From Dendrobates tinctorius (taxonomy: Eukaryota): 64,000 bases of DNA. Positions 6,971-52,049 of the stretch are shown here, in pieces. The stretch lies in contig NW_027361899.1 in assembly GCF_039654945.1 (NCBI RefSeq), positions 16,740,001-16,804,000 of the forward strand, in the 5' to 3' direction. Position numbers and translations under genes: made by a program. The notes under the pieces were generated by a model that saw nothing but the letters and a program-made list of their open reading frames with translations, had not been told where the DNA came from and made no database searches. Positions within the stretch are counted from its first letter, which is position 1. Each line of letters opens with the position of its first letter.

Positions 6971-8269
6971 ACCTCTGCACACATGTAGAGACTACACAGT
7001 AACATTGGATGGACTATTCCTCTCGGTCAGTAATATGTTTCTTTACCTTTCTGACCTCAGGTTGCGTTTCGTGTCCACGGATTATGGTAATTAGATTGTG
7101 TAATGGCTTCTCGTTAGCCGTCCGGCACTCGCAGTGTGCAGGTTCCTCCGCCACGTTGAGCATTATGCAGTGTTTAGCACCTCACAGAATGGAGTGCACT
7201 TAATCCAACAATGACCGCTTTCTTCCCGCTGAATTGTACGGGGAGCGCAGTGAAGGATTCGCATTCAGTGCATACTTGATCTCAAGCTCCATACTTGTGA
7301 GTGGCTTAACAATAAAAGGTGTCGAGATAAGAGACGTCTGCAGCTCCTAATGATTTCCTTCATTGCCATCATCTTCACAGACGTATTGAAAGAAGGATTA
7401 AAGCTTTTTATATTGATTTAAAAAAAAAAAATGAAATGTTTTATAAAAAGTCTCAGGAGTCCAGTGAGGAGGAGGAATCGGCAACTTTAAATTACATTTC
7501 TTACGAAGAATTAAAAAAAAAAAAATAGCCAATGAACATTCATTTCTAAGGAGTCATCTTCGGAGGAGTTTTTTGAAATTGTATTCAGTTAATTTTATTT
7601 AATATCTGCTTTTGGAAAATCATGACAACATCCAATATGGCTACTAACAGTCCCACAAGGGCTCTCATTAGCAAATCTGCTTCTTAAAGGGCTAATAAAA
7701 AAAATATCTGCTTTTCCTAGGGGACGATACTAGCTTTTCGGCTGCCTGAGTTGGGAATTGACCTAGCTATCTACCTCCCCACTAAAAAAAAAAAATCATT
7801 AGTAAGAAAGCTACACAAAATCTAAAACTGTCCTTCTATAGCTTGAGTTGAATATCGATGTGCAACAAAGCAGGTCTTGAGGGATGATGTGTGAATCAAC
7901 GAAGACCAGGCCAGCAGAGTATTGATTGATAGCAGAAATGTAACAGAGAAGTAAATGTAGTCTAGTATCTTCCAGCAAGGTAATGGTCAATAGCAGGAAA
8001 GCAATAAATTAAAGGTAAAATGGAGACTTGCTTGAAGAGTTGCGTTACCTTGATTGCATAGACCAGGTGTGAACAGGAGCGGATAGAGTTGAGAGAAGCT
8101 GGTAACTTGTTGAGAGGTTTGTGTGGACAGCACTAAGCAGCGAGCTTGGAAATAATGCTGGCTGCAGCACGGAAGTCAGAAGTAATTGAGGAAAACATAG
8201 GTTGGAATCAAGTGAAGTAGACAAAATGTCCTGACAAACTTAAGGCTACTGAAACCATGCTACTTAAAG

Positions 8270-14000: not shown

Positions 14001-14667
14001 ATATTTTTTATTTAAAAAAAAAAAAAAAAAACCTCTTGGCAACGAATCGCCTGGTAGTGCTGCTCTACGACCAGTTGTACTTTAAGGGAAATTTGTGACA
14101 ATATTCTTGGAGGTGATCACTTCTGGAACTAACACTGGATGAAGTGAACGAGAAATCGGATTCAGGATAATGTGAATTCTGCTCTAACGATCGTAGATGC
14201 AGTAAAGTCATATCGACTGTTCTTTTTTTATTGAGCACGTTTCTCTGATCCGCATAGATTGGAGAAGCGCATGCGCTTGGACATTGATGTGCTTCCCCAT
14301 AAGAAACGAGGAAATATAGATAATCAATGTGTCAATGGATATCAGGAAAATTGTCAGCACTTATTATCGGTTTTGTGTCTCTGGTAACAAAAGACCGGGA
14401 TCGTTATAATGCACTGAACATAACGGACATCATCTCCATGTAAATAATGTAACAGGGCCCGGACTGCACAGAATTCTAAACCGGTCTGGGATCATTCTTG
14501 ATGGCTTCAGGCCGTTCGTATCCTGAGGAGCTGTCCGTCTGTCCTATCTACTGTAACAAATGCGGTAATAAAGAATGTGCGGAGTACAATCACCAATGGC
14601 GACATACATAGTGAGCTAAAATTCAAAGGAAAGTACTAAACTTGATACAGTGTCCCATATGTGCATC

Positions 14668-17288
14668 CAGGCATTACGGCCCTGACTGGCGCATGGGGCC
14701 CGGTGGGCAGAGGGGGCCCAGTCTTTTCTGCTCACCGGGCCCCTACCCGCAGGTAAACCGGGCCCTTAGTGCAGTGCTGCGGGAGGCAGCTAAACGCTAT
14801 CGACATGCGGGCCCACCGGCCCGCACATCAATAGCTAACAGCCGCCAGCCAATCGGAGGCTGGCAGCTGACGTCAACCGTAGCACGCACCTCGCCAGCGT
14901 CTGATGTCAGTGTCAGTCGCCGGCTAGAGCGCGCTTCAGCAGCTTGGAGGGACAGATCCTCGCAAGCCGCTGGAGCGCGGCCAGATAAGAATAACTTGTT
15001 TGTTGCTTTTTTTTTTACAGCGGCGATACGAGGGGCCGGGGGCAGAATGCTGGAGACTGGGGCAGAATGCTGGAGACTGGGGCAGAATGCTGGAGACTGG
15101 GGCAGAATGCTGGAGACTGGGGCAGAATGCTGAACATGCAGCAGAATGCTGGAGACTGGAGCAGAATGCTGGACAACGGGGGCAGAATGCTGGACAACGG
15201 GGGCAGAATGCTGGACAACGGGGGCAGAATGCTGGACAACGGGGGCAGAATGCTGGACAACGGGGGCAGAATGCTGGACAACGGGGGCAGAATGCTGGAC
15301 AACGGGGGCAGAATGCAGATTGTTATGAATGAGTCACCGTAGGAGGCAAAAACAGAAATGCTAGCTAAGTCCAGAAAACCAGAGAAGTTGGTAGCTATCG
15401 GATTGCAGACCCCTGAACCTATCAACACAACTAGCAGTAGCCGTGGGGGGTTCCTACGATGCTCTAGACCCCTCGATCACAGCCGGAGGACTATATAGCC
15501 TAAAGACAGAAAGGGAAATCTAAACTGCCCCAGAGCAGACTCCAAAGCAAAAGGCAGCCCCCAACATATAATGACGGTGAAGCAAGAAGAAAGAACACTA
15601 ACACAGACAGAAAGATAGACTGAGCAAAGACGGGGCCCAAGCTAACTAGATAGGAAAGGACAGGAAGGCTGCTGTCTGAAATCCGTGAAAAACCCTATGA
15701 AAAAAAGAGCCAACAGACTGACAGTGAAAAAGGCCTTGAAGACGCTAGGCTTCAAAAAGACTATGTCAGTATTCAGGAATATTCTGAAGACAGAGCAACA
15801 GGCAAAAGGAGATTCAGCTCACCCCAGCAGGGAATGGCAGAATCCAGAAAAGCAAGGCAAACAAAAACAAAACACAAATGCTAAAAGGCAAAGCAGAAAA
15901 CTTAGCTTTAGAGGAGCAGGAATCAGACTGGTCTCCTAGAAGTCCACACAGAAATCACCCGCAGGGCAGAAGGGCGTCGGCAGCCTTGTATCCAGTCCGT
16001 GACTCCACTCAGCCAGTCATCATCATTAGGCTCAGGTGCCTGATAATCAGGCTCATTACCTTCCTTTACCAGAATAGGGAGTTCACCAGACCTCAGTGAC
16101 GAAGGGGAAAATGAACTCACAACAGGAGATTTCGGGAATGATTGGAGACAAATGGGGCAGGGTTGGATACAGATGGGGCAGGGTTGGAGACAGATAGCAC
16201 AGGATCATGGGGCAGGATGGTTATGATGGAGATCATATGGGGAAGAAAGGATACTCATGAGGGCGGGATGGGAGAACATATGGCTAAAGCCAGGAATGAG
16301 ACGGATGGGGGATATTATTACCCCCAGGGGCTAAATAAGGGATATTATTACCGCAGTGATGTATTTAATTTTTTGAGGCTACTGTTTTAAATGGGGGGGC
16401 CGTCCTGTTACTGTGCACAGGGACACTATGTCGCCTTTTTTTCTTCATGTGGTGTAATGTAGAAGCTGGGAAAAAATAAGTAATGTGTTCTGCAAGCGGA
16501 GCTCTAGGTAACTGTGTTATTTCCTGCAGAGATGAGCCCTGGCTGGAAGAAGTGATGGCGGTCTGTGCTGGATGAATGAAAAGCAAGGATGAATGACTTC
16601 ACCTAGAGACATCACTGGTGAGTTAGTGTGTTACCTATACACTGACACTATGCATTGTATACTATATACAGAGGTCCTGTGTATAATGTCACTAGTGATC
16701 ACTGTTTTACCTATACATTATATACAGAGCTCCTGTGTATAATGTCATTGATCACTGTATTACCTGTACACAGACACTGCATACTAAATACAAATCTCTT
16801 GTGTATAATGCCACTTACAGTGATAGTAAGTTTTTTTTTTATTAATGATCAGCATTGCAGTATTCAGTCACCATGTGGTGGTAATATGTGGTCTGGGCAT
16901 GGTGCGGTGGTATTTGTTCCTTGTATGTGATATTATTCGGACACTATGGTAGTAATATGTGGTCTGGTCTTGGTGTAGCGGTATTTGTTTCTTGTATGTG
17001 ATATCATTGGTCATTTTAAAAATTGAAAAATAAAAAATATACCTAAAGTGTATTGCATATTTTAACAAATATTTAATAGGTTACAGTAGAGTAGAGCCCG
17101 GCTTAAAAAAATTCTTTTGTCCAAAGCAAAAGCTGCCGGCTATATGTGTGATCTGGTGATGGGAACTGTTAATGTGTGATAGGGGACTGTGGACAGTTTG
17201 AGGGGTGGAGGCGGGGCTGGGTGGAGTCTCAAGGGGGCCCCAAACATTTTGCCAGTATGGGGCCCCAAAATTCCTAGTAGCAGCCCTG
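14668..17288 (+). mobile_element. Non-autonomous hAT-type element, left arm of the composite (5' TIR partly deleted)
   Basis: Colinear with 25638-27984. Ends ...tagtagcagccctg. Contains a 20/21-bp tandem array (15040-15317) and a solo LTR. Confidence 0.8.
15321..16124. mobile_element. Solo LTR inserted in the left arm
   Basis: Termini TGTTATGA...TCACAACA; flanks GCAGAT/GGAGAT. The empty site gcagaatGGAGATaagggg is visible in the right arm at about 26045-26063. Confidence 0.75.
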
Positions 17289-19880
17289 GCTCAGCTTCTC
17301 CAGAGCCATTGTTCCAGTCTGTATAAGGTCTGTGCTAAGTCTATTCCACATATGGTCTTCAGTGTATCCTCATCACATTCCAAGGATTCCAGGGCATAGT
17401 TCCAGCATATAGACGCCATCTTGCCACACCACGTCTGAACTAGCTTATGTTAGGTTAATAATTGATTTCATTAGCCATTCTCTCCTTCACAGTACAGCAA
17501 TAAGTTGTAATGTCAAGTCAGGCCCATATACATTTGGACCTCATGAACCAACAACTCCCAATATGTCTTAAACAATGATAAGGAGATGCTGGGAGTGGTT
17601 GTTATCAGTCATTATCAGACTGTGGACCATGCAGCAACCACAATACTGATGAAACGCAGGAAGTATCATATGTAAACGTTTACATCCAGGTACCTAATAG
17701 GAGACATCTTCTCCGAGTGGTTTCTTTCTTCTTATTTCCATCTTGACCAGATGCCATGATGACTTTTCACATCCACAGCTGTTCCCTGCAGACTTATCTC
17801 TTCTCCAATCTTCTGGAGCACATCCCCACATGGTGCCCTTAAAAATCAAAGTGTTACTAGAGTGCCTTCTGCATAAAAAATATCTGTCCATACTATGTCC
17901 TAAATACTGTAAGCCCCCTATGGTGTATGGCCTCTACACTGTCTGCCTTACTAATCCACAACCACATTACTGTCTGCCATTATCAGCTACAGTATAACTG
18001 CCACAATGTCCGTCATTAGGAACCACGGCCTATACCATGGCTGTCCTCTCTGTGTTCCCTTTTACTCTCTATATCTCCATACCGTCCCCGCTATGCTAAC
18101 CTTTCTCCATACTATGCACCCATTTCACGCTGTCCCCATTCCATATCCATTTTGTGCCCTCTCTTCACACTATGCCATCATACTGCCCACCATTTTGTCC
18201 TCTCCAAACTACACAGCATGATGGTCACCACAGCCACCAACAGTCTATACATAAAAGATTCCAAATATACACTATGATGTCAACCACAGCCTCCTATGCA
18301 GTACAATATAGACCACAGCCCCCGTTATATAGTATAGTCACCAGCACAGCCCTTAAAATACAGCATAATGCCCCCAACAGCCTCCCATATAATATGATGT
18401 CCCCACAGCCCCTCTTGTTATGTCCCCACAGCCCCTCTTGTAATGTCCCCACAAGCAACCCATCATAATGTCCTCACAGCCAGGACCTCATAATATCAAC
18501 AAATCCACAGTATAAGTCACCGCCTCATAGTTTTCCATATAGTATAATGCACCCAATAGTCCTCCATGTAATATAATGGATCCCATAGTCCTACATACAG
18601 TATAATGCACTGCCTATAGTCGTCCATATAGTATAATGCACCCCTGTAGTTCTCCATACAGTATTCTGGCCACCATAAAGTTCTCACTGATTAAAAAAAT
18701 AAATAAATACTAATTTCTCCTCCTCATTCGCCCACTGCTGTGGTCTCTGCAGTGAACTCTCTTTTAATCAATACAATCAGACCAGACTTATTATTATCAG
18801 ACTTAATATTATTCCAAGATCAGTATATCTTGGAATAATAATAAGTTCTAGAATTGGATGCATTTAAAAAAAAAACTCCCTGTGCTGAGATAATCTTATA
18901 AATGTGCCCCTGCTGTGTACTGTGTAATAGCTGTGTCTGTGTGCAGGAACATGGTCTGATCACACCACAGCTCCTGGGCAGAGGAGGAAGTAAAAGAGTA
19001 TACAGACAGTACAGCACAGGATCACAGCTGATTCTGTGAGATAAAGCATTTCCCTGCCTATCAAAGAAAAAATTTGCGATCCAGGGCGGCGCCATTTTGG
19101 TGGAGGACATTTTTTTCTTCTCTAGCAAGATGACGCCACCTGCGCAACAGTAGCTATTGGATCTCTATACAAACCGATAGCTGCTACTGCGCAGGCACCC
19201 CGGGCGCCATTTTCAAAATGGCTTTCTTTTTTTTTCCCTCGCTCAAGTATATCTGTAAAAGGGATTAAGTTCACAGTAACCATGCGATTATGCTGCAGCT
19301 CATTCATTATGCAAACTAGGGGGCAGGGCAGTGAGAGATCAGTGAGGGGGTCTGTAGTCTGCATTATGATCATCTAATCGGAGCACCGCATACAAGAACC
19401 CCGCCTTAGGGCACGAGAATCTCATTAATACGAAACTGAAAATAAAGATTAAGAAAAAGCCACAAGACGGATTTCATCAACCAAAGTATCATCTTATTCA
19501 GTATAACAGCACCGACCTGACATTGCCTGTAGGTCACTATGCACAATCCTGCTGACAGGTTCTCTTTAGGTGGGCGGCTTTATATAACAAGAGCGGATTT
19601 CGTTAGGAAATGGATAAGGAAAAAACAGAGTATTACAGAATAGAAGAAATTACTAACGAGAGTTATAAAATATGACGGTGTGGTTTTGCTCCTCAGAGAA
19701 TTTTGAAAATTGTGGAAACAATTGGGAATAAAATGTAGTGGAAGAACATTAAAACTCGGGGGAGCGATAATCAACAGCTTAAACATTACTGGGGGTCTCT
19801 ATTTTTAAATGTTTGTTTATGTGGGGGTTTTTATTATTTTTTTCTGAAAAATTTAAAAAAGGTTGGGAGTGAAGGAATTA

Positions 19881-20059
19881 GGCCGGGGTCACGCGCGAGT
19901 CTCTCGCCTCAATACCCGGCACTGCCGCCGGCGGCTCGGAGCAGAGAGTTCAGTTGCAAAGAAATACATGCAGCCGCACACTCCGGTCCCGAGTGCCAGC
20001 AGTATTGCCTTGCAGTGAGGCGAGTTTCTCGCATTGCACTCACAAGTGTGACCCCGGCC
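19881..20059. mobile_element. Short PIF/Harbinger-type MITE about 230 bp upstream of the GCNA-like ATG
   Basis: TTA-GGCCGGGGTCAC...GTGACCCCGGCC-TTA. Confidence 0.85.
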
Positions 20060-20285
20060 TTAGGAAGATTGTTGTTTTTAATTGATTTCCTCTTTATGTA
20101 TTGGTACTGTATGTTTTGTACAATTAAATAAAGTTGTAAAATTCAAAAAATGAGCAAACAATTACAGCATTCTAATGATGTCAGAATGGGCTGGAGGCTA
20201 TAGAATGCCGCGTCACCCAGGGTTCCGTTGAGGGTTTTAGTAGGCGTTTGTGGAGAGAGGAGTGTTGTGAGCGACTTGTGCAAAT

Positions 20286-23200
20286 ATGATGCCAAGAAAG
20301 CGATTTAAGAGTATTATAGTTCTCTGTGATACCGAGGACAGCAGTGATAATGACGATTTACATCAGGTGAGCATCATTTTATATTCTTAAATAAATAAAA
20401 TATATTTCGGATAAAGGTTCAAGAAAAAGATGGTGGGACAGAAAATATAGCTCCAAGTAGATGAGGAGATAACTCGGATCATGTCTGCAGAGTAAAGACT
20501 GCCCTCACTTGTAATATTTGTGACAATATGTCCATGTACTGGATGCATAATATTCTATGAAGACACAAATGTCACCACCGCCCCTATCCATATCCCAACC
20601 ATATGTGCCCCATACCCCCGTTATACTCTGTACGTGGAATAAGCACAATGGAGACCACACTCATATCGCTGCCCACCTGTAATCAGTGGAATATGGAGTA
20701 AGATTATAGATTGGAGATGTTCATGGTTATAGATTCTGATGTGTTTGTCATTTTTTTCAGTCTCATCGAAGAAAGAGGCCAATTCAGAGGTCTTCAGGCC
20801 AAGATAACACCACTGGCTTCAATTCGGGCCCGACTCCGAATTTACCAGGTACTGTAACCCTAATCTAGTAAAGACTCTGATGTATTAATAAGCCATTGTA
20901 GTCACCGGGTGCAGATCACGTGCACATTGTGGTCAGGGCTTGGATTTATCTTTATTATTCGTCTGTGGTAGAGTTTATATCAAACATTTCTGTTCAGCAT
21001 TTGGTCAGGAATATTCATGCAGGCGTTATATAGTCAGAACAGACATGGGATTTGGGGATTGCTTCTCATGGTGGCCATGTACAGGGCAGATTACTTTTGA
21101 TATTGAGCCTCAGTCTTTGCTATTACAATAGTCTAATAAGATATTTATGTTGTGTTGCCCCCACAGATCTGATTTTACCAACTTCAGATGATCCGGACAG
21201 TTCCAACTGGTAAGACTTACATCTCCTCCATTACTACAGTAGATACATGATGGGGATTAATGGCTAATGATGGCTCATAGTCTGTTACATTCATTTCACA
21301 GCTCCGATGACATCATTATTGATGATGACGATTCCAATAGAGCAGCAACTTCCATGTATAATAGTAAGTTATCATTTCTAGACAATCAAGGTTTATGTTA
21401 TTGTAGAAATAACAATGAATTTTCTGTACTGTCATGGGTCAGTTTCCAAATATAACAATTACAAGGGCGCTGATCAGGAGTTGGAACAGCGAGCCACCTG
21501 GGAAATGTGCTGTAAATGCCACTGTCAGAGAATGACAGCAGCATTTAACAGGTTAACAGAAGCAGGCAGCGCTCCAATCCACTCTCGGCTGTCAGAGGCA
21601 GATGATGACTGAATGACACGACCATCATCTGCCAAGAAAGAGGCGGGCTCAACTCCTGACCTCTCCCTTTATTCTCTACTGATAAGTGTCATACATGGTT
21701 GTTAAGGGGTTAAATTAAAGATACCTTACAGAGGTAATCCTATTTTACGCATGCTTGAGTTGTGTGGATCCTGTGTCTCGGATATTTCCACATTGGGAGA
21801 ACAAGTCACCGCCATGTTGACTTATGGCCATTGTTGTCCCTAGAGAATTTATTACAGATGTGCAACACATTTGCTTGTGTCTTTTCGGAAATCCAACAGA
21901 CATCAATGGACAAAGCCCTGCAGCAAGGAATCCCACATCTCCATTAAAACCAATGGAGGCTACCATGAATCAGCAAATGAGGTGATAGGACCTCTAGTCT
22001 TATTTTATATGAAGCCCTCGGAGAATGGACCCCTACCATTTGAGAGTCCACCCTCCGGCCATTGAGGACATGTTCACTTCTGATCTTGTACTGAGCACAT
22101 ACAACATTAATAAGGATAGATTAGCTGAGCAACAGGTGGGATACACATCTGGGAAAGTTTATGGACCCTGTTGTTGCTGAACCCCATTATAATTTCAGAT
22201 CCTGATCCCAATGGAAGATCCTGTGGATTTCTGGTGGTCTGGTCAACTATGTGTTCTGCTCTGGTCGGATCCCATATTCATAGTTTTATTAGTCCTCTAC
22301 ACTCTATATTTATAGACCCCTCTCTAGTACGGGCCTGCATACTAACATGTCTGATTTGAGCCTTATAAAAAGTATTTTCACTCTTTCATATTTCTGTACA
22401 GATAATTTACCGTCTGATAGCGAGGAGAGCTCCGCTACAGAGGAGAGGTAAGTTAGGCCAGATCCATCTAACTCTATATAAAGCCATGAACTAGGCAGGA
22501 TGTTTCCTGTGGATTTATATATGATTCCCTATCTTTTCCAGGACACCACGATGTAACATCCCCGGCTGTCTCCTGGAAGAAATTATTTCTCCTACTTCCA
22601 TCTATGTTACCCACTTCCAGGAAAATAAGGAGGAGCTGGTGGAGCGACTGTACAACTGGTACAACCGGACAGTCTTCGACAATAAGGTATCACATCTTAT
22701 CATGGGTTTCTGGGTGATACATGACTTCTCCATTATCTCCCCTTTAAACAATAAATTCCAAGAAAAATGGCTCTATCTTTCTGAAAGGCAGATTCCTAAC
22801 CCCATTGTCATGTTTCTGTAATATAGTTATTGAACATCTCAGGTAAAACTCACTTAGTTTGGTAAATGCCGTCACCCTCTTCCTATCTGTGGGACAAGAG
22901 GAAACCTTAGATGATCCACCATTGCAGAGACAAAAAAGATTAGCAACTTTTGGCTTGAAGTTCAAAGGATTTTTACATTTATTTATAAAAAACATTTAGT
23001 TGATATTTGGACATTTTAGAATAAGTTTATTTTTATTTTTGTTCTCACATCTTGGACTTCTCGGTAGACCCCATGCCCCATACAAGTAGGCCAGTGCTGT
23101 AAATCACACATAAGAGTTGGGCACTTTGTAAGATCGGGGTCAAAGAGTTTCTAGATGTAACGGAATTTGTTTTCTTTATTTTAGCTCCCTTTGAAAATGG

Positions 23201-24443
23201 CCATTTTGTGGAACAAGAGGCTGAGAAAAACATCCGGCCGATGCTGGAATAACTTGTACAAAAACCGCCGTTTCTCATATATTGAGCTTTCCGAAAAAGT
23301 CTGCGATTCTGCCGGTAGGTTTCACATCACATCCATCCTACAGCTTCATAAGACAACCTGTATACAGGGCAAAAAAACTGCTACTTGTTATGTAGAACAT
23401 CTTATAAACTCATTGTACATACTGTCATAAGAAAAACTAAGTACACCCTCTTTGAATTCTAATATTTTACATATTAGGAGAAAATTAAAAAAAAAAGTAT
23501 CAGCTCCATAGAAAGTCCTAAAAGTAGGGAAATACAATCTCAGAAAACATGAAAAAATAAAATATTGCATCATTATTTAACAAAAAGTAGGCCAAAAGGC
23601 AAAAACGGTGTGTGATTAAGTACACCATTGATGCAACTTCAAGTTATTGCTGCTAAAGAGGTTTCTAAAAGCTATTGATTCATGGGGTGTACTTATTTTT
23701 CCACTCTCTGCTTCTGCATTTTGAAGTAGTATTCAGTAAATAAATAACGGCGCGGTTGACTTGTCACGTGTTGTTCATCTCCAGAAGTAGTTTGTATTTT
23801 GTCCTGCTATGTAAAACCCAATAGTTCAATCAGGGTGTACTCAGATTTTCTCATAACTGTATAAACTCTTGTTTTAGAGCGAGTAAGATCCGCACTTGCG
23901 CACGAGCTGTGCCATGCCGCCTGTTGGCTAATCGCCGGTGAACAAAGAGACAACCATGGCCCGTTATGGCAGGCTGTCACAAGAAGGGTAAATCTTATCC
24001 ATCACGAGCTGCCAAAAGTGACACGATATCACAAATATACCATCAACTACAACTACAAGTACAAATGCGACCTGTGTGGTGAAGAGTAAGTGGATTTTAT
24101 ATGACTCATCTCCTCCGTACACACAATCACTGCGGAGAGACGTCTGTGCGGTTCTGTTGGTGGAATGCTTTCATACTTTACTACTATCAGAGCGGACTGA
24201 CGTCTGGGGGCTGTAGGGTTTAGGATGCTACGTGTTATATTTTCTGTGCTGGGCCAGTTCTTAATATATTGATTTCAATTTGTTCTTTTTAATATAATCC
24301 ATGGTATTAATGAACGTTCATTCCAGTCCAGTAACCAATATCCCTCTTATCTTTGCAGAATTGGGCGATTTAGACCAATACCTGACAATAAACGTAAATG
24401 CCGCCGGTGCAGAGGTCGAATGCGTCAACTACCCATCAGCTAA
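20286..24443 (+). CDS. gcna-like: GCNA/ACRC-like SprT-family zinc metalloprotease, 295 aa, 9 coding exons, nested antisense in galnt14 intron 1
   Basis: Exons 20286-20366, 20761-20848, 21167-21209, 21302-21363, 22402-22447, 22542-22686, 23185-23314, 23878-24085 and 24359-24443. All introns are GT-AG and phases are consistent (888 nt, no internal stop). Protein: MMPRKRFKSIIVLCDTEDSSDNDDLHQSHRRKRPIQRSSGQDNTTGFNSGPTPNLPDLILPTSDDPDSSNCSDDIIIDDDDSNRAATSMYNNNLPSDSEESSATEERTPRCNIPGCLLEEIISPTSIYVTHFQENKEELVERLYNWYNRTVFDNKLPLKMAILWNKRLRKTSGRCWNNLYKNRRFSYIELSEKVCDSAERVRSALAHELCHAACWLIAGEQRDNHGPLWQAVTRRVNLIHHELPKVTRYHKYTINYNYKYKCDLCGEEIGRFRPIPDNKRKCRRCRGRMRQLPIS. CxIPGC, WNxR, IELSxKVCDSA, HExxH...HG and CxxC...CxxC are GCNA SprT hallmarks. 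The five small N-terminal exons are less certain than the domain exons. Confidence 0.88.
22542..22686 (+). CDS. GCNA-like exon 6 (start of the SprT region)
   Basis: ttttccag acceptor, gtatc donor; encodes TPRCNIPGCLLEE...NKEELVERLYNWYNRTVFDNK. Confidence 0.9.
23185..23314 (+). CDS. GCNA-like exon 7
   Basis: ttttag acceptor, gtagg donor; encodes LPLKMAILWNKRLRKTSGRC...IELSEKVCDSA. Confidence 0.9.
23422..23859. mobile_element. Old non-autonomous Tc1-like element in GCNA-like intron 7
   Basis: Inverted termini TA-CTGTCATAAGAAAAACTAAGTACACCC / GGGTGTACTCAGATTTTCTCATAACTG-TA. Confidence 0.65.
23878..24085 (+). CDS. GCNA-like exon 8 with the catalytic HExxH (HELCH at 23901-23915)
   Basis: gttttag acceptor, gtaag donor; encodes RVRSALAHELCHAACW...NHGPLW...YKCDLC. 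Confidence 0.92.
24359..24443 (+). CDS. GCNA-like last coding exon (second CxxC, stop TAA at 24441-24443)
   Basis: ctttgcag acceptor; encodes IGRFRPIPDNKRKCRRCRGRMRQLPIS*. Confidence 0.85.
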
Positions 24444-24743
24444 ACATGTAACTATTCTTCAGAATATTTAGCCTCTAATTTGGTTTCTTTAGAATGTAAA
24501 GTCGAGACACTTTTCTATATTTTCCCCTGAGTAACGAGACAATGGATATCTGTGTCCATCACCAGCAATTAGCAGCAAAGATCCAGAATCCGTCCTCATA
24601 GGTCACCAGATAAACCCTGGCTACATTTCCCAGAACTTGCTGGCTATGGAATGATTGACAATTCCCAGCAATTATAGAAGAAATGCAATATAGTTTTTAT
24701 TACTGTATTTATTTGTTCTAATGATTATTTTTTCTTGCTGCAG

Positions 24744-25333
24744 AATTTTTTAAATTCTGGTTGAGAATGATGAAAGTTATCAGCCTACTGCTGCGGAAGA
24801 ATCGCCAACACACAATCTGACGGGCGAGATGAGTCCCTCTGACATTACATGCCGTATAGATCTATTGTGAGTGCTCTCACCATAGCCGTCTGGTTCATGT
24901 CGCATTTTTCTAACATTGCACTATTATTGGCAACGTCCTATTTTCAATTTCCATATTGGCCTTCCTTGTAGACAATATATAATGCAATATTTCACGTCTA
25001 TTTCAACTTCAGCCGATGACCAGAAATATAATGCTGAAGTTGCCTTCTCTGAGTTGGTTTCTTTTGATCACCAGTATATTTTGTCAAGCTTTTTAAAAAC
25101 ATCTTTCAATTGTTTTCAGGTTAATGAGAAAGGCGACTTATCGCTTCTATACAGGCATGACCCATCTTGGAAGAAAAAGCTGAATACCTGCACCGACCTG
25201 CGCTGAGAACATGATCAGATGCAGTTTCCAAGACCTGGAGAATCTCTACAAGTGCTGGACATTTCAACTTCAATAGTCATAAAGAGTTTTTTTTTTTTCT
25301 AATTTTTCTAAGTTAGATATAAATACCAATAAA
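24744..25333 (+). other. Putative 3' UTR exons of the GCNA-like gene (24744-24866 and 25120 to about 25350) with polyA signal
   Basis: Donor gtaact 4 nt after the stop; acceptor tttttcttgctgcag; donor gtgagt at 24867; acceptor tgttttcag at 25119; AATAAA at 25328-25333. Confidence 0.55.
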
Positions 25334-25637
25334 AATGAATATATTAATTCTTTCTAATTTTGGATTTTTGTTCTGCAAAACGATGGCTGTTGATAAACTT
25401 ATTACAATCAATGAAACACAGAGAAACACAGTACAACAAACGTGCAAAAAATACTCTGTTGTAAAATAATAGATATATCAGTAAACAGCAAGTGCTAGTA
25501 AAGAGATGACAAGAAAAAAGGGCATTTAGTTGATACGTTTTTTGCAAAAAATGTATACTAAGTCGCTCTACCAAACGTCAAGCTATAGCCATCAGAGCAG
25601 TCCCTAACCTGATGTATTTAAAACCTGACCATGTGAA

Positions 25638-27984
25638 CAGGGCCACCATCAGGGCATTACTGCCCTGACTGGCGTATGGAGCCCGGTGGGCAGAGGGGGC
25701 TCGCATCAGGCCCTGTCCCTTCTGCTCACCGGGCCCATACCGGCAGGTGAACCGGGCCCTCAGAGATGCGGGAGCAGCTAAACACTATTGACATGCGGGC
25801 CTGCCGGCCTGCACGTCAATAGTTAACAGCCGCCAGCCAATCGGAGGCTGGCAGCTGACGTCAGCCGCAGCGCGCACCTCGCCGGCGTCTGACGTCAGTG
25901 TCAGTCGCCGGCTAGAATGCGCTGCAGTGTGGAGGGACGGAGCTTCGCCCGCCGCTGGAGCGCGGACCAGGTAAGAAGAAATTGTTTTTGTTTTTTGACA
26001 GCGGCGATCCGGGGGGCCCGGGGGCAGAATGCTGGACGCTGGGGGCAGAATGGAGATAAGGGGCATGATTGGAGACAGACTGCACAGTATCATGGGGCAG
26101 GATGGATACGATGGAGATCATATGGGGAAGAATGGATACTCATGAGGGCAGGATGGGAGAACATATGGCTAAAGCCAGGAATGAGACACATGGGGGTCAG
26201 GATGGGGGATATTATTACCACAGGGGCTAATTAAGGGATATTAATTACTGCAGTGATGTATTTCATTTTTTGAGGATACTGATTAAATGGGGGAGCAGTC
26301 CTGTTATTGTGCAGAGCGACACTATCGCCTCTTTTTCTTCATGTGGTGTAATGTAGAAGTTGGGAAAGAATAAGTAATGTGTTCTGCAAGCGAAGCTCTA
26401 GATAACTGCAGAGACGAGTCCTGGCTGGAAGACGTGATGGCGATCTGTGCTGGATGATTAAAAAGCAAGGATGAAGTACTTTACCTAGAGACGTCACTGG
26501 TGAGTCAGTGTGTTACCTGTACACTGACACTATACACTGTACACTATATACAGAGGTCTTGTGCATAATGTCACCAGTGACCACTGTGTTACCTGTACAT
26601 TATATACAGAGCTCCTGTGTATAATGTCATTGATCAATATATTACCTGTACACAGACACTGCATACAAAATACAGATCTCCTGTGTATAATGCCACTTAC
26701 AGTGATAGTATTATGTTTTTTTATTAATGATCAGTATAGTAGTATTCAGCCACCATGTGGTGGTAATATGTGGTCTGGACATGGTGTGGTGGTATTTGTC
26801 CTGTTATGAATGGGAAACCGAGGAGGAAAAAAAAGACAACAAGCTAAGTCTCAGAAAACCAGAGAAGTTGGTAACTACGCAGATTGCAGATCCCTGAACT
26901 TACCCGCACAACTAGCAGCAGTCGTTGAGCGTTCCTACGTTGGTCCTAGATGCCTCGTCACAACTGGAGGACTACATAAGCCTAAAGCAGGAAAAGAGGA
27001 AAACTAACTGCCCCAGAGCAGACCCCAAAGAAAAGAAAGCCCCCCACATGTATTGACGGTGAAACAAGATGAAAATACAAACAAAGGCAAGAAAATAGGC
27101 TGAGCAAACGATGGGGCCCGGCTAACTAAAAAGGCCAGAAAGGAAAGACACTGTCTACAATCTGCCAATAAAAACCTACAAAAATATTGTCCAACACTTC
27201 TGATAGCAAAATTAACCCTGAAGTCACTAGACTTCTAAACCTATATGAGCACTCTGAAATATTCTGAGACAGAGCAAAAAAGAGGCCAATCTAATAAGGG
27301 ACAAAGAGCAGATTGGCAAATACTGATTAATAGGAGTGGAATTTCAGCATAGCCCCAGCAGGGGCAGGCTGATTACACAAAAACCTGAATTGACAACAAG
27401 CGCAAGTGTGAACATTAGCAAAAAAACAAACTTAACTTGAGAAGACTGGAAGAGAGCTGAAGTCCAGGACCTGAGAAGCAGACTGAATCACCAGCACATG
27501 GATAGGGTGTCGGCTGTCTTATATCCAGTCTGATACTCCAGAGATCCAATCGTTATCTTCCTCATCAGGTGGCAGATCACTACCACTTAAACCACAACCG
27601 CACTACCTCCTGTCACCACCAGAGGGATATGGTAGTAATATGTGGTCTGGTCCTGGTGTGGCGATATTTGTTCCTTGTATGTGATATTATTGGTCATTTT
27701 AAAAATTGAAAAATAAATAAAAATATACCTAAAGTGTATTGCATATTTTAACAAATATTTAATAGGTTACAGTAGAGTAGAGCCCGGCTTAAAAAAATTA
27801 TTTTGTCCAAAGCAAAAGCTGCCGGCTATATGTGTGATCTGGTGATGGGAACTGTTAATGTGTGATAGGGGACTGTGGACAGTTTGAGGGGTGGAGGCGG
27901 GGCTGGGTGGAGCCTGGGCGGAGTCTCAAGGGGGCCCCGAAAATTTTGCCAGTATGTGGCCCAAAATTCCTAGTGGCAGCCCTG
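25638..27984 (+). mobile_element. Non-autonomous hAT-type element, right arm of the composite
   Basis: Imperfect TIRs CAGGGCCACCA... / ...TGGCAGCCCTG; colinear with the left arm. Confidence 0.8.
26802..27627. mobile_element. Related solo LTR, truncated at its right end, inserted in the right arm
   Basis: Begins TGTTATGAATG and is colinear with, but diverged from, 15321-16124 (shared agaaaaccagagaagttggt, aactgccccagagcagac). The insertion point differs from that of the left-arm LTR. Confidence 0.7.
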
Positions 27985-28177
27985 TGTGCATCTCAGAATT
28001 TCGGAGAGAACTGGCGATGATGTTGGTTTAACTGGTCCAAAAAAACCGATTTACAACGGTCCTACATACAATACAACCATGGAGATCGCATGGCATTATC
28101 CCATAACCGCCATCATACATAGGCTCTAGTGAGGGCTGCATATTTCACAAAAGAGTAACCATCCCAGAAACCTATAA

Positions 28178-28525
28178 GGCTAAGTGCACACGTACTTTTT
28201 TGCCCTGCGGATTTTTCCGCGCAGAATTGAAGAAATCCGCAGGTCAAATGACCTGCATTTTTCCTGCGGATTTCTTCCTTTTTTCTTGCGGTTTTCCCCT
28301 GCGGATTTGGAGAATGGAGCAGGTGGAAAACCGCACAAAAGAAGTGACATGCTGCATATTTTGAACCACAACAAAACCGCACGGAAAAATCCGCAGCGTC
28401 TGCACAGCGTTTTTTTTTTCTATTGATTAACATGCTACTGTACATCACAATGCGGATATGCAGCGTTTCTGCGCGGTAAAATCTGCTGCGGATCCGCTGG
28501 AAATCTGCATTGTGTGCACATGGCC
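28178..28525. mobile_element. PIF/Harbinger-type MITE
   Basis: TAA-GGCTAAGTGCACAC...GTGTGCACATGGCC-TAA with internal tgcgga/tccgca palindromic repeats. Confidence 0.8.
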
Positions 28526-28988
28526 TAAAGATTCAGGAACTGGAAGAAAAAAACTATTTGTATAGAAAGGTAATAAATGCAAACGATGGAAGATGGAAAC
28601 TACAACCTGCTAATCCTCCCTTCTAAATTTGACAGAGGTTGATTTTATCTGCAAAACCCTTCACAGTCTGCGTTACTGACCCCGATCACGAGGACGCCGA
28701 TCTGACTGACAGATGCTTCTATAATTGATTCCTAAGGAGCTTCTCACATGATCAGCTCATCCATAGCAAATACTTGTAAAAAACAATAGGGTGAAGGCAA
28801 ATCCACGTGAGTCAGCCATTCCTGCAATGCTTCCTGCACCCAGGTCTCTCATCATTTTACCTTTCCATTGGAATAAAGACGACATATTTGATTATTAGTA
28901 AAACGTCTAGCACTATCATGGCAAATCACAGAGTTCTCACAGTGTCACATTCAGCAAACCTCCAATATACTGATAACGAATATTCTAG

Positions 28989-29368
28989 TACACAGGGGCA
29001 GTATTATAGTAGTTATATTCTTGTACATAGGGGCAGTATTCTAGTAGTTATATTCTTGTACATCGGGGGCAGTATTATAGTAGTTATATTCTTGTACATA
29101 GGGGCAGTATTATAGTAGTTATATTCTTGTACATAGGGGGCAGTATTATAGTAGTTATATTCTTGTACATAGGGGGTAGTATTATAGTAGTTATATTCTT
29201 GTACATAGGAGCAGTATTATAGTAGTTATATTCTTGTACATCGGGGGTAGTATTATAGTAGTTATATTCTTGTACATAGGAGCAGTATTATAGTAGTTAT
29301 ATTCTTGTACATAGGAGCAGTATTATAGTAGTTATATTCTTGTACATAGGAGCAGTATTATAGTAGTT
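28989..29368 (-). repeat. Same 35-bp minisatellite, reverse orientation, left part
   Basis: ggggcagtattatagtagttatattcttgtacata units. Confidence 0.95.
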
Positions 29369-30162
29369 GTTACTGTTACGCTGCGGACGCAGGTGACGAG
29401 AGTGGACCCACTGGGCCGTGACGCCGAGCCCTCCCCGAGCGAGCGCACCAATGGACCGACCCCTATACAGGGACCGTTAGGGAACAGACTCGGGAAGTTC
29501 TAGCGCCACGGCAGCCAGGACCAGGGGTCGGCTCAGGAGGGTGAACAGATGATGAGGAACAGAGGAAGATCCGGAGAGGAACCAGGATGACCAGGGTCCA
29601 AAGGCTGAGGAAGAAGGAGAAGGACGGAGGAGGATGGCGGGGGTCCAGGAAGAGGCGAACTGAAAAGGGAAGGAGACACAGGGGTTAGCAGGAGGCACGG
29701 ACCGGAGAGTCAGAGGAACACTGGGGACACAGGCGGAAGACACAGGGGTTAGCAGGAGGCACAAGACACAAGGGGTTAACTAGTGCGCAGCTTGCAAGGG
29801 ACTAGCAGCAGAGAGCGCGGCCTAGACAACCGAGAGGTAACTCAATAGTCAGGCGCCTCCACTAAGGGAGGGCGGCCTGAAATACCTGGTGGTGGCCTCT
29901 GATAGGTCGGGAGGCCGGTCCGGGTCAGGTCACGCCAGACAGGTGGCTGCCGGCAGAGGCGTGCGGCTTATCCCTCCGGCGCGTGCGCAGAGGCACAGTG
30001 CGCGCGGCCGAGGGAAGTGGAGGAGAGCGTCGGGACGCCGGCCGCCGGAAAGCGAGGGGAGCGGAGGCGCGCGTGCAGGACGCGTCAGAGGAGCGAATCG
30101 GGGCAGAAGCAGGAGCGGTGAGTATGGCAGCGGGAGCGGCGAAACGGGGAGGGGTGCTAACA

Positions 30163-33100
30163 GTACCCCCTCTCTTACACTCCCCTCCACTGCGTCTGGC
30201 TAAAAACCTCTTAAGAATGCGTGGGGCACTGATATTCTCCTGCGGCTCCCAAGATCTCTCCTCGGGACCAAAACCTTTCCAGTCGACCAAAAAAAAGGTT
30301 TTACCTCTAACTTTTTTCGAGGCCAGAATGTCTTTTACTTCGAACACGTCATCAGACGTGACAGGAAGAGGAGAAAGGTTCGGGGCCGGGTGAAACCGAT
30401 TCAGGACAACCGGTTTAAGGAGAGAGACGTGGAAGGAGTTGGGAACCCGAAGCGACGCAGGCAACTCCAGTTTGTAAGATACGTTGTTAAGACGTTTGAG
30501 AATCTTGAAAGGCCCAATGTAGTGCGGTCCCAGCTTGTAAGAAGGGAGCTTTAGCCTAATGTACTTGGCCGACAACCAAACTTGTTGACCTGGGAGGTAG
30601 GTTGGAGCATCCAAGCGTCTTTTGTCAGCGTGCCTCTTCATGCGCTCCCCAGACCTCCGGAGGGCCTCCTTAGTTTCGGACCAGATCCTAGAGAACTCTT
30701 GGGTCAGAGAATCGGCTGCAGGCACACCGGAGGAACCGGACAAAGGTAGAGGGACACCAGGGTGCATGCCAAAGACCACGAAAAATGGAGACTTGGCTGA
30801 TGACTCGCTGGGATGGTTATTGTAGGAGAATTCTGCCCAGGGAAGTAGATGGACCCAGTTATCTTGATGAGCGTTAGAGAACTGCCGTAAGTAGGACGCT
30901 AGTACCTGTTTAACGTGTTCAACCTGACCATTGGACTGGGGATGGTACGCGGATGAAAAGTCCAGTCTTATCTCTAGAAGTTTACACAAGGCCCTCCAAA
31001 AATCGAGAGGTGAACTGTACACCTCGATCGGAAACAATATGCTGTGGAAAGCCGTGGAGGCGGAAGATGTGCTGGATAAAAATCTTCGCCAACTCTGGAG
31101 CGGTGGGCAGCGCAAGTAGAGGAACAAAATGGGCCATCTTGGAGAAGCGGTCGACCGCTACCAGGATAGTCGTAGATCCGGAAGATTTAGGCAGATCCGT
31201 GATGAAATCCAAACCTATATGTTGCCATGGAACCGAGGGAATCAGGAGAGGAAGCAGAAGGCCGGCGGGTGGTCGCCTAGGAATCTTGACCTTGGCGCAA
31301 GAGGGACAGGAGGCCGTGAAGTCTGTCACATCCTGGCGGAGTGAGGGCCACCAATAAAAACGAGCGATGAGCTCAAATGTCTTCTTGACTCCGACATGTC
31401 CGGAAATTTTAGAGGAATGTCCCCAATGCAGTACCTTTTTTCTTTCTGAGTCAGGGACGTAGGTCTTGCCGGGGGGAGGAGTAATCAGTCTCACCGGGGC
31501 CACAGTGATGATCTTAGCGGGATCGATAATGTGAGTTGGTTCCTCCATCAGATCAGGGGACTGCAGAGACCGGGACAATGCGTCCGCCTTGATGTTCTTT
31601 GGCCCGGGACGGAAACGCAATTCAAAATCGAACCGACCAAAGAAGAGGGACCATCTGGCCTGCCGAGGGTTAAGTCTCTGAGCTGACTGGAGATATGCAA
31701 GGTTTTTGTGGTCGGTAAAGATGGTAAACGGATGGACCGACCCTTCAAGAAGGTAACGCCACTCCTCCAGTGCCAACTTTATGGCCAACAGCTCGCGATC
31801 CCCGATGGCGCAGTTACACTCAGCCGGCGAGAAGGCCTTTGAAAAGAACCCGCAGGTAATCAGTCGGCCGGACGGGGACCTCTGTGAGAGCACTGCACCT
31901 GCTCCAGTGGAAGAGGCGTCTACCTCCAGGATGAATGGCTTATTAGCCTCGGGTCGGTGTAGGACAGGTGCAGTCGCGAAGGCTTGCTTCAGGCAGGAAA
32001 AGGCCTCTTCAGCCTCCGGGGGCCAGGACGAGGAGTTGACGCTCTTGCGAGAGAGACTGGAGATGGGTTTGATGATGGACGAAAAATGTGGCACAAATTG
32101 ACGGTAATAGTTGGCGAAGCCGAGGAACCTTTGAATCGCCTTGACCCCCACTGGGCGGGGCCATCGAAGAATAGCCGACAGTTTCTCAGGATCCATCTCC
32201 AGCCCAGAATCTGAAACGATGTAGCCCAAGAAAGGCAAGGAAGACTGCTCAAAGAGACACTTCTCAAGCTTCGCGTAGAGGCGATTCTCCCGCAGACGTT
32301 GTAGGACCAGACGAACACTCCTCCTATGGGACGCCAGATCCGGGGAAAAAATAAGGATGTCGTCCAGATACACCACCACGCAGGAGTATAACAAGTCTCG
32401 GAAGATATCATTGATGAACTCCTGAAAGACCGCGGGAGCGTTGCAGAGACAGAAGGGCATAACCAGGTATTCGTAATGCCCGTCCCGGGTGTTAAAGGCG
32501 GTCTTCCATTCGTCACCAGGGCGAATGCGGATGAGGTTGTAAGTTCCGCGTAGATCCAACTTCGAGAAGATGCGGGCTCCCCGCAACCGGTCAAAGAGTT
32601 CAGGAATGAGAGGCAACGGATACTTGTTCTTCACAGTAATGTCGTTCAGGCCCCGGAAATCAATACAAGGACGGAGAGAACCGTCTTCTTTACAAAGAAA
32701 AACCCGGCTCCGGCCGGGGAGGAAGATTTCCGTATGAACCCTCGAGCTAAATTCTCACGAATATACTCGGACATGGCCGTAGTCTCTGCAGGGGACAAGG
32801 GATAAATTCGCCCTCGGGGCGGAGTGGTCCCGGGTCGCAGGTCAATAGGGCAGTCATACGGGCGATGCGGGGGAAGAACCTCTGCCTCCTTCTTATCAAA
32901 TATGTCAGAGAATGCCCAGTATGCGGCTGGTAGAGCCTCGGGACCCGAGGAGGCTGGTGGGGGTTTGGCCGGGCGGACAGACCCCAGGCACTTCTCTTGG
33001 CAGGGATGCCCCCAGCGGAGGACCTCACCGGAACGCCAATCCAAGACAGGTTCATGTGTCCTAAGCCATGGAAGACCTAGCAGCACAGCATGGGAAAGGT

Positions 33101-33428
33101 TGGGAAGGACGTAGAAAGCGATCCGCTCCTGGTGCAAGGCCCCAATTTGCAGACACACCTCCTCCGTTACCAGGAACACAGATTCTCGTAGGGGTCTTCC
33201 ATCTACTAAGGTGATGACACGTGGAGTCTTCAGGGAGATCACGGGAATCTGATACTTCTTCACCTCCTTCAACCTAATGAAGTTCCCTGCCGCGCCCGAG
33301 TCCACATAGGCCACCTCCGAACCACGTCTCTGACCCACAACCAACTGAACCGAAAGGGTAAGGGGGTGAGAGGAGTGAGACACACCTAGATCGGCCTCTC
33401 TTACCTGCCCTAGGTGGAGGAGTTTCCC
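30163..33428 (-). pseudogene. Gypsy pol (PR-RT-RH-IN-chromodomain), broken by two frameshifts (about 32685 and about 30998)
   Basis: ORFs 32646-33383, 30982-32634 and 29925-31127 join across VKK/DGSL and FTSRF/WRAL. Confidence 0.9.
33368..33428 (-). promoter_or_regulatory. -1 ribosomal frameshift signal (G GGA AAC plus predicted H-type pseudoknot) at the gag/pol junction
   Basis: Slippery heptamer at 33428-33422; stem CACCTAG/CTAGGTG; loop GAGAGG can pair with downstream CCTCTC; pol is in the -1 frame. Confidence 0.8.
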
Positions 33429-33589
33429 GGTCTCTCAGGACAGGAGCGTAGGAAGCGAGACGCGCTGCCGCAATACAGGCACAGACCCTCCATCAGTCTC
33501 TCCTTACGACGTTGTTCTGCCAACTTGACCCGATCCACCTGCATTGGCTCAGGCGCCGGACTGGAGGATGCCCAGGGGGACGTGGGCTG

Positions 33590-36046
33590 GACAATGTCAG
33601 GATACAGAGGAATCGCTTGTTGCACTGTTATTTTTGATGAACGGTCAAATTTCTCAATTTCTTTTAGTGCACATGAAAAATTCTGCTGAAATGTACTGGC
33701 TGTGTTCCTTGATGGGGATGACTCTTCTTCTATGCGGTAACGCTTTGCACGGTCCTTGTGATCCAAATATTTTTCGAAATTAAATTCTTCATCAGTTGAT
33801 GATGAGGGTGAAGATGTGGCAGGACGACCAAATTCTTCTTGTTCCTCCTGACTGTTCTGCAACCCTTTCATCCTTACTGCTATTTCAAACAGAGCTTCTT
33901 TTCCTTTACTTAGCTGTTGATCATCTAGAAGAATCCGATGCATTGGGTCTACATAAACAGCTGCCAAAAGAATGTTATTTTGTAATAGTAGCTCCTCTCT
34001 CCGTTTCATTGATGTAGCAATGCCACTTGCAATTAACCCTCCTCTTTGGGACAGGCGAAACATCAGGTTCTTCCACTCCTTTAAGAAAATACCTGGAGTT
34101 AAGTCCTCTGCTTGTCATTTTTTAGTCACTGTAAATGGGTGCTCTAGCAATTTTTCCAGCTCAGTCACCTGATTCCACTGACTTTCATTTAGCGTCAGTT
34201 GAGGGTTAGCCATGTCTACAAGAAAGGTTTTCAGTTCAACCAAGCGCTGAATCATTAAGTAAGTACTGCCCCATCGTGTGGCTTGATCAATTGCCCCTTT
34301 TCCAGCACGTCTCTTCAAAATTGAGTCAACTTTAGGGGTTCTGGCAACAGTAGCCAATTTTCTCACCTTGCAGCAGCATGTCCTTCTTACAGACTGTCTC
34401 TTATAGCCAGCTGTAGCGTATGCACAACACAGTGCATGTGATGAATGAAAGAACATATTGACACAGTTTCAACAAGATCATCTAAACTATCATGTTGCTG
34501 TTCATCTGAAGCAACTTCAGTTTGCTCCTCAGTTACAATACTGTGGTTCCTCTATTTCAAACATTTCTGTGTCTGTGGACCCAGAATGTTCTTCTAGCTG
34601 CTGGTCACCATCATTACGCTCATTCATTAGCTTAATAGTACTTATCATATTTGAAGCATTGTCAGTTACGACAGAAAGAACTTGCTCTTTTTTAAGTTCA
34701 TAGTCTTGCAGAACCTTTTCCACCAAGACCTGGAGAAACTCACTGGTGTGATGAGCTTTGGTGTCTTTTACTGCCAATGTCTTGGTAACTATTTCATTTT
34801 TGTCACAAACAAATCGGACATTGATGGCAAAATAGTTCACTCTGTGACGTGTGCAGGCATCCATTTTAAGAAACAGAAAGCGTCCCTTGAGAGTTTTTTT
34901 AAGTTCTTCCTTTTGTTTAAAAGCTTCTTCGATTACTAATTTTCTAATACTCTCTCTCTCTCCAGAGAAACACCAAGCTTGCGGGCCATTTCCCCATTCA
35001 GACACATAAAAGCTGGTCGTGAAAATAATGAAATAGACACACTATCCTTTACAACAAGCTCTATGATCTGTTTTTTAAATGTATCTACTGTCATTGTCAC
35101 AGTAACTTTGTTACTGACAAAATATCTTGCAACTGATGGCTGCAAAGTTCTCTGCTCCTTTGTTTGGCTGGAAGAGCTAGGCACTGGTTCATTGGTTTGG
35201 ATGTAGTCTTTCTCATCCACTGCTTTCAGTACTTCTGGATGAAAGTGCTGTAAATGTCTCTTTAGATTAGAAGCTCTGGTAGGAGCATTTTTATCTTTGC
35301 CTGAATATGCACTCATCTTGGCTTCACAGCATTTGTTTTCGTCTGGATCATTTGTCATACACTGACAGACATAATGTTTTCTATCTTGAGTGATGGTAAA
35401 ATGTTCAAATACAGCTGATTTAATGTGATGCTTCTTTGACAGTCTCAGGTTTTTAATTATGCATTCACAATCCAAATGACAATTGTTTTTCCTAAAAACA
35501 ATTGTACAAAATTATTGCCAGGTCGTACAACTGATATAGTGGTCAGTAATACTGTTATTATTCCTCATGTACTCACAGTTAACTGATGCAAAGTTTGTTG
35601 AAAGGATAATACTTCTTACAGTCTTCCTCTTCTGAGTAGCAGGCAGCTGTGAGATGCTTGGAAGACGCACACCTAGTATGATCTAGTCTAGAGGAGGAGC
35701 TTTACTACTAAGAATTTGCAACACATTTTCAATTTCAGTTTCATACATTGTAAGTAGGGGGGTTGGGGCAGCATGAGGTTAACCAAGTATAAGATTAGAT
35801 AAGGGCAGTGGAGAACAGTGACACACAAGAAGTAAGAAATGTCTCTATCTCCAGCAGAACTGCTTATCACTGTTGTTCATAGTTTGATAGAACATATATA
35901 TTTGAGTAACATTTATAAAATTCATATGAAAGTTCAATTATGAAATATTAATACATTTTTTTTTTAAAGCTGGAGTCGGAGTCGGTACATTTCTACCGAC
36001 TCAGACTCCGACTCCAACCAAAACTAACTCCGACTCCACAGCCCTG
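33590..36046 (-). mobile_element. Degenerate autonomous-type hAT (Ac/ZBED-like) transposon, one end missing
   Basis: BED finger (VFEHF...C...C...SNLKRHLQHFH), MDACT, VTDNASNM and TRWGSTYLMIQRL in frameshifted ORFs 33590-35475. Terminus CAGGGCTGTGGAGTCGG with GAGTCG subterminal repeats at 35972-36046. Confidence 0.9.
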
Positions 36047-42963: not shown

Positions 42964-44516
<1,553 letters not shown>

Positions 44517-52048: not shown

Positions 52049-52049
52049 C

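Follow-up and report, generated by a model that had tools for sequence, protein, structure and literature searches.

The subject of this analysis is a 64,000-nt stretch of the Dendrobates tinctorius genome (contig NW_027361899.1, positions 16,740,001 to 16,804,000), referred to as the window. Within it lies a 13.3-kb block (14668-27984) in which two direct copies of a repeat family that we call E stand on either side of a complete gene for a protease resembling germ cell nuclear acidic protein (GCNA), and a single 8-bp duplication surrounds the whole. We favor, with moderate confidence, the view that the block was formed by a hAT-type macrotransposition, in which arm, gene and arm would have moved as one unit; we infer this movement from the one outer duplication. 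Vertebrate DNA transposons pick up small gene fragments, and to our knowledge there is no case in which a pair of them carries a whole multi-exon gene. The composite, if confirmed, would reveal a way of duplicating genes that is new for vertebrates.

The 8-bp duplication and the flanks of the arms

The sequence TGTGCATC occurs only twice in the whole 64-kb window, once at 14660-14667, directly outside the left edge of the first E copy (arm 1), and once at 27985-27992, directly outside the right edge of the second (arm 2). The left outer junction reads ...cccata TGTGCATC CAGGCATTACGG... and the right outer junction reads ...GGCAGCCCTG TGTGCATC tcagaatttcgg..., and because the bases adjoining the 8-mer differ at both sides, the outer identity is exactly 8 nt. 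Duplications of 8 bp are typical of hAT elements with CAG ends. Inside the composite, arm 1 is followed by GCTCAGCT (17289) and arm 2 is preceded by CATGTGAA (25630). When flanks were compared with shifts of up to 4 nt in either direction, the best match between the two flanks of a single arm was 5/8 for arm 1 and 6/8 for arm 2, and the outer flanks of the composite matched 8/8 at shift 0. The layout is that of a macrotransposon, with two elements of the same family in direct orientation and a single outer duplication, and with none belonging to either arm. A paralogous empty site was not found within the window.

For random pairs of places in the window, the empirical chance of a shared 8-mer is 6e-5 to 1.4e-4. 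A preliminary description of the stretch had pointed out the same 8-mer outside both outer ends, the lack of a target-site duplication for either arm alone, and the succession of arm, whole gene and arm inside a single duplication, and all three of these observations were borne out. It had also put the chance of the shared 8-mer at 1 in 65,000; the probability is low, as claimed, and the empirical values are somewhat higher than that figure.

A repeat at the inner edge of arm 2 provides a second view of the junctions. Depths given here and below come from Logan contigs of four runs placed on 22400-28399, i.e., on the right half of the composite; summed contig depth is not a copy number, and single-copy contigs with a perfect or near match have depths of ~6-12. 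The last 226 nt of the cargo between the arms (25412..25637, + strand) belong to a high-copy repeat, R (depth ~46,000), that is truncated at the point where arm 2 begins. A second copy of R at 36971-37205, which is 81% identical to the cargo copy, runs on with CAGTACCTATATGAG..., and this continuation has no counterpart beside arm 1 or beyond the right edge of arm 2, the natural extent of R being uncertain from two copies. Comparison of these sequences suggests that the left and right flanks of arm 2 do not belong together.

Might the two E elements instead have inserted independently around a resident gene, so that the identity of the two 8-mers is a coincidence? Such a history would involve deletion of the left end of arm 1 together with its duplication and a rearrangement of the flank of arm 2. 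The left end of arm 1 is in fact truncated, so its own duplication would be absent anyway, the CATC within the 8-mer can be aligned to the end of the family, and a chance of ~1e-4 per pair of places has to be set against the very many windows that were screened. We nevertheless regard independent insertion as unlikely, since three improbable things would have to come together, namely a truncation of arm 1 that happens to give an 8/8 match, a complete arm 2 with flanks that do not match each other, and the missing continuation of R. That the identity extends over exactly the length expected of a CAG-ended hAT element also argues against coincidence.

The arms and their family

The arms belong to a real mobile family that is present in thousands of copies. 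From 25800 onward, the bins of the arm have depths of 2e4 to 8e5. In run X5, at least 10 contigs have 25638 as their exact starting point and are unlike the sequence upstream of it (agreement 0.45), which places the family terminus at 25638 next to many different flanks and gives the many copies a sharp common end. The family appears to be hAT-like, judging from its CAG-type ends and from the single 8-bp duplication of the composite. hAT elements make up 3.9% of the D. tinctorius assembly (PMC11152451). For the open reading frames (ORFs) inside the arms, no candidate was found in the protein collection, and no exact ORF is on record. Degraded hAT/DUF659-like ORFs lie to the right of the composite at 33.4-35.4 kb. 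The E-end motif was not found in that region except for one match at 33001 with 3 mismatches, as many as chance would give. These transposase-like ORFs (33400-35400, minus strand) have a BED-finger-like N-terminus and a weak match to DUF659, and their neighbors are a satellite of 35-bp units (36048-36875) and the other copy of R.

The arms were compared by blastn and global alignments, and Kimura two-parameter (K2P) distances were computed without gaps. Arm 1 (14668..17288, + strand) is a non-autonomous hAT-like copy of E made up of blocks A, C and D, and arm 2 (25638..27984, + strand) is a complete E copy with both of its inverted ends. The homologous blocks are 83-93% identical between the arms (blastn, gaps counted). 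Block A spans 14664-15069 in arm 1 and 25647-26052 in arm 2 (K2P 0.12), block C spans 16175-16927 and 26060-26808 (K2P 0.09), and block D spans 16945-17288 and 27628-27984 (K2P 0.03). The 3' block D is far more alike between the arms than blocks A and C, and gene conversion between the arms is a possibility.

Each arm also contains a nested repeat, B, that is unrelated to E and occupies a different site in the two arms, lying between blocks A and C in arm 1 (~15321-16090) and between blocks C and D in arm 2 (~26803-27626). The B copies, which start with TGTTATGAATG, are ~80% alike (K2P 0.23), and depth over the repeat reaches 7.8e5. Contigs of other E copies skip 26746-27638 (joint 26745->27639), which confirms that B was inserted into a family element that did not have it. 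Arm 1 carries a 21-bp tandem array as well, at 15032-15317. Part of block A (14786-14980 in arm 1; 25774-25965 in arm 2) is GC-rich and resembles a promoter or first exon, with a CCAAT box, TGACGTCA and, in arm 2, a GGTAAG donor. The E family may have captured this piece from the 5' region of a host gene at an earlier time.

The inverted ends of arm 2 are 16 nt long (CAGGGCYRCCAYYAGG) and are located at 25638-25653 and 27969-27984, reading CAGGGCCACCATCAGG at 25638 and, as the reverse complement, CAGGGCTGCCACTAGG at 27984. The right inverted end of arm 1 is present as well (17273-17288). The 16-nt end starting with CAGGG therefore stands at three of the four arm ends, and it has no other mismatch-free match in the window. 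Such a start agrees with the 5'-YARNG (CAG...) beginning of the short terminal inverted repeats of hAT elements. The exception is the left edge of arm 1, which reads CAGGCATTAC. The preliminary description had depicted two direct copies of one element with CAG-starting terminal inverted repeats; the direct copies are there, as are the repeats at three of the ends, but the copies are less simple than described, with the nested B, the tandem array and the truncated end of arm 1, where the repeat fails.

The proposed movement of the unit and its alternatives

How might the unit have come to its present site? We infer a donor locus, an action of transposase on the outer ends and a later loss of one of these ends, arranged as follows. 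At the donor locus, two direct members of the high-copy, non-autonomous, hAT-like family E would have stood on either side of a short GCNA-like gene. A hAT transposase supplied in trans would have acted on the two outer termini, 5' on the left element and 3' on the right one, and the whole arm-gene-arm unit would have been excised or copied and then inserted where it now lies, with insertion giving rise to the one 8-bp target duplication, TGTGCATC. The arms would each be without a duplication of their own because, on this proposal, the inner junctions kept the flanks of the donor locus. After insertion, the outer 12 nt of arm 1 would have been lost without disturbing the duplication, possibly through slippage between the CAGGG(C) sequences at positions 1 and 13 of the family end.

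Several points weigh against this proposal. The left edge of arm 1 is missing the first ~12 nt of the family inverted end, and the left outer end of the composite, being short of that much of its inverted repeat, does not have the form of a competent end today. The end of arm 1 may have been intact when the unit inserted, and every model in which TGTGCATC is a true duplication needs a later and precise loss of these 12 nt. The edge can be aligned to the family in two ways. In one, 12 nt have dropped out between the pair of CAGGG(C) repeats, and TGTGCATC stays pure flank; in the other, which is ungapped, the CATC of the 8-mer corresponds to positions 10-13 of the family end (repeat family D13), and part of the supposed duplication would then belong to the element. 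Moreover, the same single duplication underlies both the 8-bp length assigned to the family and the mobility of the unit, and very many windows were screened, so that a few chance coincidences of 8-mers are to be expected somewhere. The uneven divergence of the arms (K2P 0.12, 0.09 and 0.03) is left unexplained by macrotransposition. Finally, some hAT groups have target preferences of the form nTnnnnAn or nnnTAnnn, and TGTGCATC appears to fit neither. The preliminary description had a hAT transposase moving the gene-bearing composite; it is supported in part, in that the geometry, the mobile arms and the intact gene hold, and arm 1 now lacks ~12 nt of the inverted repeat on which such a transposase would depend.

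The contigs that reach the right flank of arm 2 bear on whether the block is correctly assembled. A contig of organism A covers 27961-28202 with 0 differences and a depth of 12.3 (i.e., single-copy), running from the last 24-25 nt of arm 2 into the flank, and a contig of organism B (27960-28174) runs from the last 24-25 nt of arm 2 into the same flank. A contig of organism C matches the right flank from 27989, and its 52 further letters, at the place that arm 2 occupies in the window, did not align to the stretch. Together these contigs hint that the insertion is common to organisms A and B and possibly absent in organism C. The assembly may have been misthreaded from a solo E at this site into a similar E-cargo-E locus and back, or the block may belong to an ampliconic or tandem array of arm plus cargo that has nothing to do with transposition, but an artefact or array of this sort is in our judgment quite improbable. 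Arms of 2.3-2.6 kb at very high copy number around a multi-copy cargo are the kind of sequence that is prone to misjoins, and in the four runs none of the contigs placed on 22400-28399 crossed an end of arm 2 with the 31 nt that count as a bridge. GCNA-like genes also occur in apparent tandem clusters in Ranitomeya variabilis, as indicated by runs of consecutive accession numbers. On the other hand, arms that differ by 3-12% and carry B at different sites would not be confused by accurate long reads, the contigs of organisms A and B pass from arm 2 into the same flank, and a tandem array would leave the 8-bp duplication unexplained.

An alternative that reproduces the geometry in full is recombination. 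A resident solo E would have made the TGTGCATC duplication, and a circular or ectopic segment of arm plus cargo would have entered it later by homologous recombination or gap repair; at another locus, two E copies on either side of the gene could recombine and release such a segment. The signature would be identical to that of a macrotransposon (a duplication outside, none inside and both arms full), the thousands of E copies are possible landing sites, and no competent outer end would be required at the time the cargo arrives. Capture by gap filling or template switching is, in addition, the main route reported for the way in which animal Pack-TIR elements (which are bounded by terminal inverted repeats, or TIRs), the frog hAT-N8_XT among them, obtain their host sequence (PMC8277862). 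Organism C offers a weak argument to the contrary, in that its contig should have continued to align if a solo E stood here, and it stops at 27989 with its 52 unplaced nt. Recombination would also require the later loss of the arm 1 end, and circles seldom integrate by homology in the vertebrate germ line. We consider this history improbable, and macrotransposition remains the explanation that we prefer.

Other readings were tried and rejected. A long terminal repeat (LTR) retrotransposon is ruled out by the introns of the cargo, the structurally different arms and the inverted CAG...CTG ends, and a Helitron by the target duplication and the inverted ends. The cargo is not a separate transposon inside one E, as both arms are complete (A-C-D) and the ends of the cargo have neither an inverted repeat nor a duplication. 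Insertion of arm 2 in place within R, with the right flank as the continuation of R, was dismissed after no homology was found.

Frog hAT capture of gene fragments and plant macrotransposons have already been published, and the composite has likenesses to both. In the maize Ac/Ds macrotransposons (Huang & Dooner 2008; Zhang 2014; Wang 2022; PMC9910405), hAT ends of separate elements act jointly, host DNA forms the cargo, and one 8-bp duplication surrounds the whole unit, as in the layout described here. Maize thus offers a direct precedent: its hAT macrotransposons measure 10-28 kb, are bounded by 8-bp duplications, and can excise, reinsert and rise in number (PMC9910405). The frog composite differs in that it resides in a vertebrate, its arms are old, non-autonomous and 3-12% diverged, its cargo is a complete intron-containing gene, one of its outer ends is now incomplete, and its mobility is deduced from sequence.

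Among animals, the nearest parallels are the Pack-TIR and Pack-hAT elements, such as hAT-N8_XT of Xenopus tropicalis, which carries a fragment of the CAPSL 5' untranslated region (PMC8277862). The frog Pack-hAT shares with the arms a non-autonomous hAT-type element bearing duplicated host sequence, and multi-copy Pack cases with distinct 8-bp duplications are described (PMC8277862); block A of the arms may itself be a Pack-TIR-like capture. The fragments captured by Pack-TIR elements, however, are small (median 224 bp) and lie inside one element (PMC8277862), whereas the composite has 8.3 kb and a whole gene between two elements. The bacterial transposons Tn5 and Tn10 and the giant 'TE' elements of Drosophila, which are flanked by foldback elements, likewise use a pair of elements to mobilize passenger genes through the outer ends. 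Their transposase families and the rules for the orientation of their arms are different, and they have genetic proof, whereas the frog composite is known from sequence. In the literature searched, we found no vertebrate case in which two full elements form a composite with a complete gene of 9 exons between them.

The cargo gene, its amplification and the surrounding window

The cargo (17289..25637, + strand, 8.35 kb) consists of an upstream region, the GCNA-like gene, a 3' region and the truncated copy of R. The predicted gene, which would encode a SprT metalloprotease of 295 aa, extends over 20286..24443 on the + strand and has 9 exons (20286-20366, 20761-20848, 21167-21209, 21302-21363, 22402-22447, 22542-22686, 23185-23314, 23878-24085 and 24359-24443) that join into an open 888-nt frame with AG/GT at every intron. 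The SprT-like domain of Pfam (PF10263) matches exon 7 (E 2e-4) and exon 8 (E 2e-10), and exon 8 contains HELCH, a zinc site of the HExxH form, with the His of NHG downstream of it. Acidic runs are found in exons 1-5, and the sole AATAAA/ATTAAA between the stop codon and arm 2, at 25328..25333 (+ strand), is a candidate polyadenylation signal. No spliced contigs were seen among those placed on 22400-28399, and the contigs of run X15, which is labelled 'RNA?', include introns.

The closest proteins are annotated as 'germ cell nuclear acidic protein-like' and come from dendrobatid frogs, with listed identities to the model ranging from 58 to 81%. They include P0174 of D. tinctorius itself (81% over 204 aa), several proteins of R. 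variabilis that align over the full length (59-67%), and P0171 and P0172 of Anomaloglossus baeobatrachus (58%). Taken as a predicted gene model, the cargo gene is an intact SprT/GCNA-like paralogue. The complete multi-exon GCNA-like gene of the preliminary description is thus upheld by the open 9-exon model, the Pfam match and the GCNA-like best matches.

Three features are common to the cargo protein and canonical vertebrate GCNA/ACRC, a germline protease of the SprT family, namely HExxH and a third His within a SprT-like domain, I/V-rich acidic runs like SUMO-interacting motifs (SIMs) in an acidic N-terminal part, and a C-terminal tail rich in Cys. It is much shorter, however, at 295 aa as against ~480-580 aa, and PF17283, which canonical GCNA proteins carry, is absent from the precomputed Pfam matches of its closest short relatives. 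Unlike canonical GCNA, which exists separately in dendrobatids (P0212, P0218 and P0219), the cargo protein falls in a frog-specific, expanded 'GCNA-like' clade.

The gene segment is itself present in many copies. Summed depth over 22400-25399, which takes in exons, introns and the 3' flank, lies between 560 and 1440 for organism A (X1) and between 700 and 1550 for organism B (X7), i.e., ~50-150x the single-copy level in these two related frogs. The depth is made up by a few contigs, each with a depth in the hundreds, that differ from the window at many fixed positions, and single diverged contigs of cargo paralogues have depths of 6-9. The depth, which is of the order of tens to more than 100 copies, and the profile, which is even across introns, indicate that the whole gene segment is an amplified unit. 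These values suggest a recent amplification to the order of 100 copies, of a unit that ends somewhere between 25400 and 27984. Short GCNA-like paralogues number in the dozens in R. variabilis, on at least 4 chromosome-size records, and are also found in Rhinoderma, Eleutherodactylus, Engystomops, Pristimantis and Hyla. We found no description of a ~100-copy GCNA-like amplification in poison frogs in the literature searched.

It is conceivable, though rather doubtful, that the arm-gene-arm unit was the vehicle that amplified the gene to ~100 copies and spread it across poison-frog chromosomes. If so, the composite would be a vertebrate hAT macrotransposon that shuttles a complete, intron-containing germline gene, and it would explain in concrete mechanistic terms how GCNA-like SprT proteases became so numerous and dispersed in hyloid frogs. 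Such a unit might persist since a protease acting on DNA-protein crosslinks would help the element or the germ line to withstand the damage caused by transposition. The preliminary description had proposed a SprT-protease family dispersed in this manner; the multi-copy cargo in two frogs and the paralogues on several R. variabilis chromosomes agree with a dispersed family, which the composite might have helped to disperse. The hyloid GCNA-like expansion merits study whatever its mechanism.

The remainder of the window contains a possible host gene and further repeats. A first exon of the signal-anchor type (MTPQTMRRTARRLLLTLTGLVWIAILIFLL...) is located at 52206-52343 on the minus strand, beside a CpG island at 52000-52700, and a 28-bp tandem array of ~100 units (49.1-52 kb) lies next to it. 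The exon resembles the N-terminus of a GALNT protein. The preliminary description had placed the composite in intron 1 of galnt14; the identity of the exon as galnt14 was not confirmed, since motif scans and an exon search gave nothing usable. If this were the first exon of a host gene, the composite would lie in a downstream intron, antisense to that gene. The satellite with a 35-bp unit forms three blocks, at 3300-7000, 28924-29421 and 36048-36875, one of which is inverted. There is an N gap at 43395-44046, and ORFs for LTR-retroelement pol and Tc1-like transposases are found at 30700-32500 (minus strand), at 42600-44800 and at 57800.

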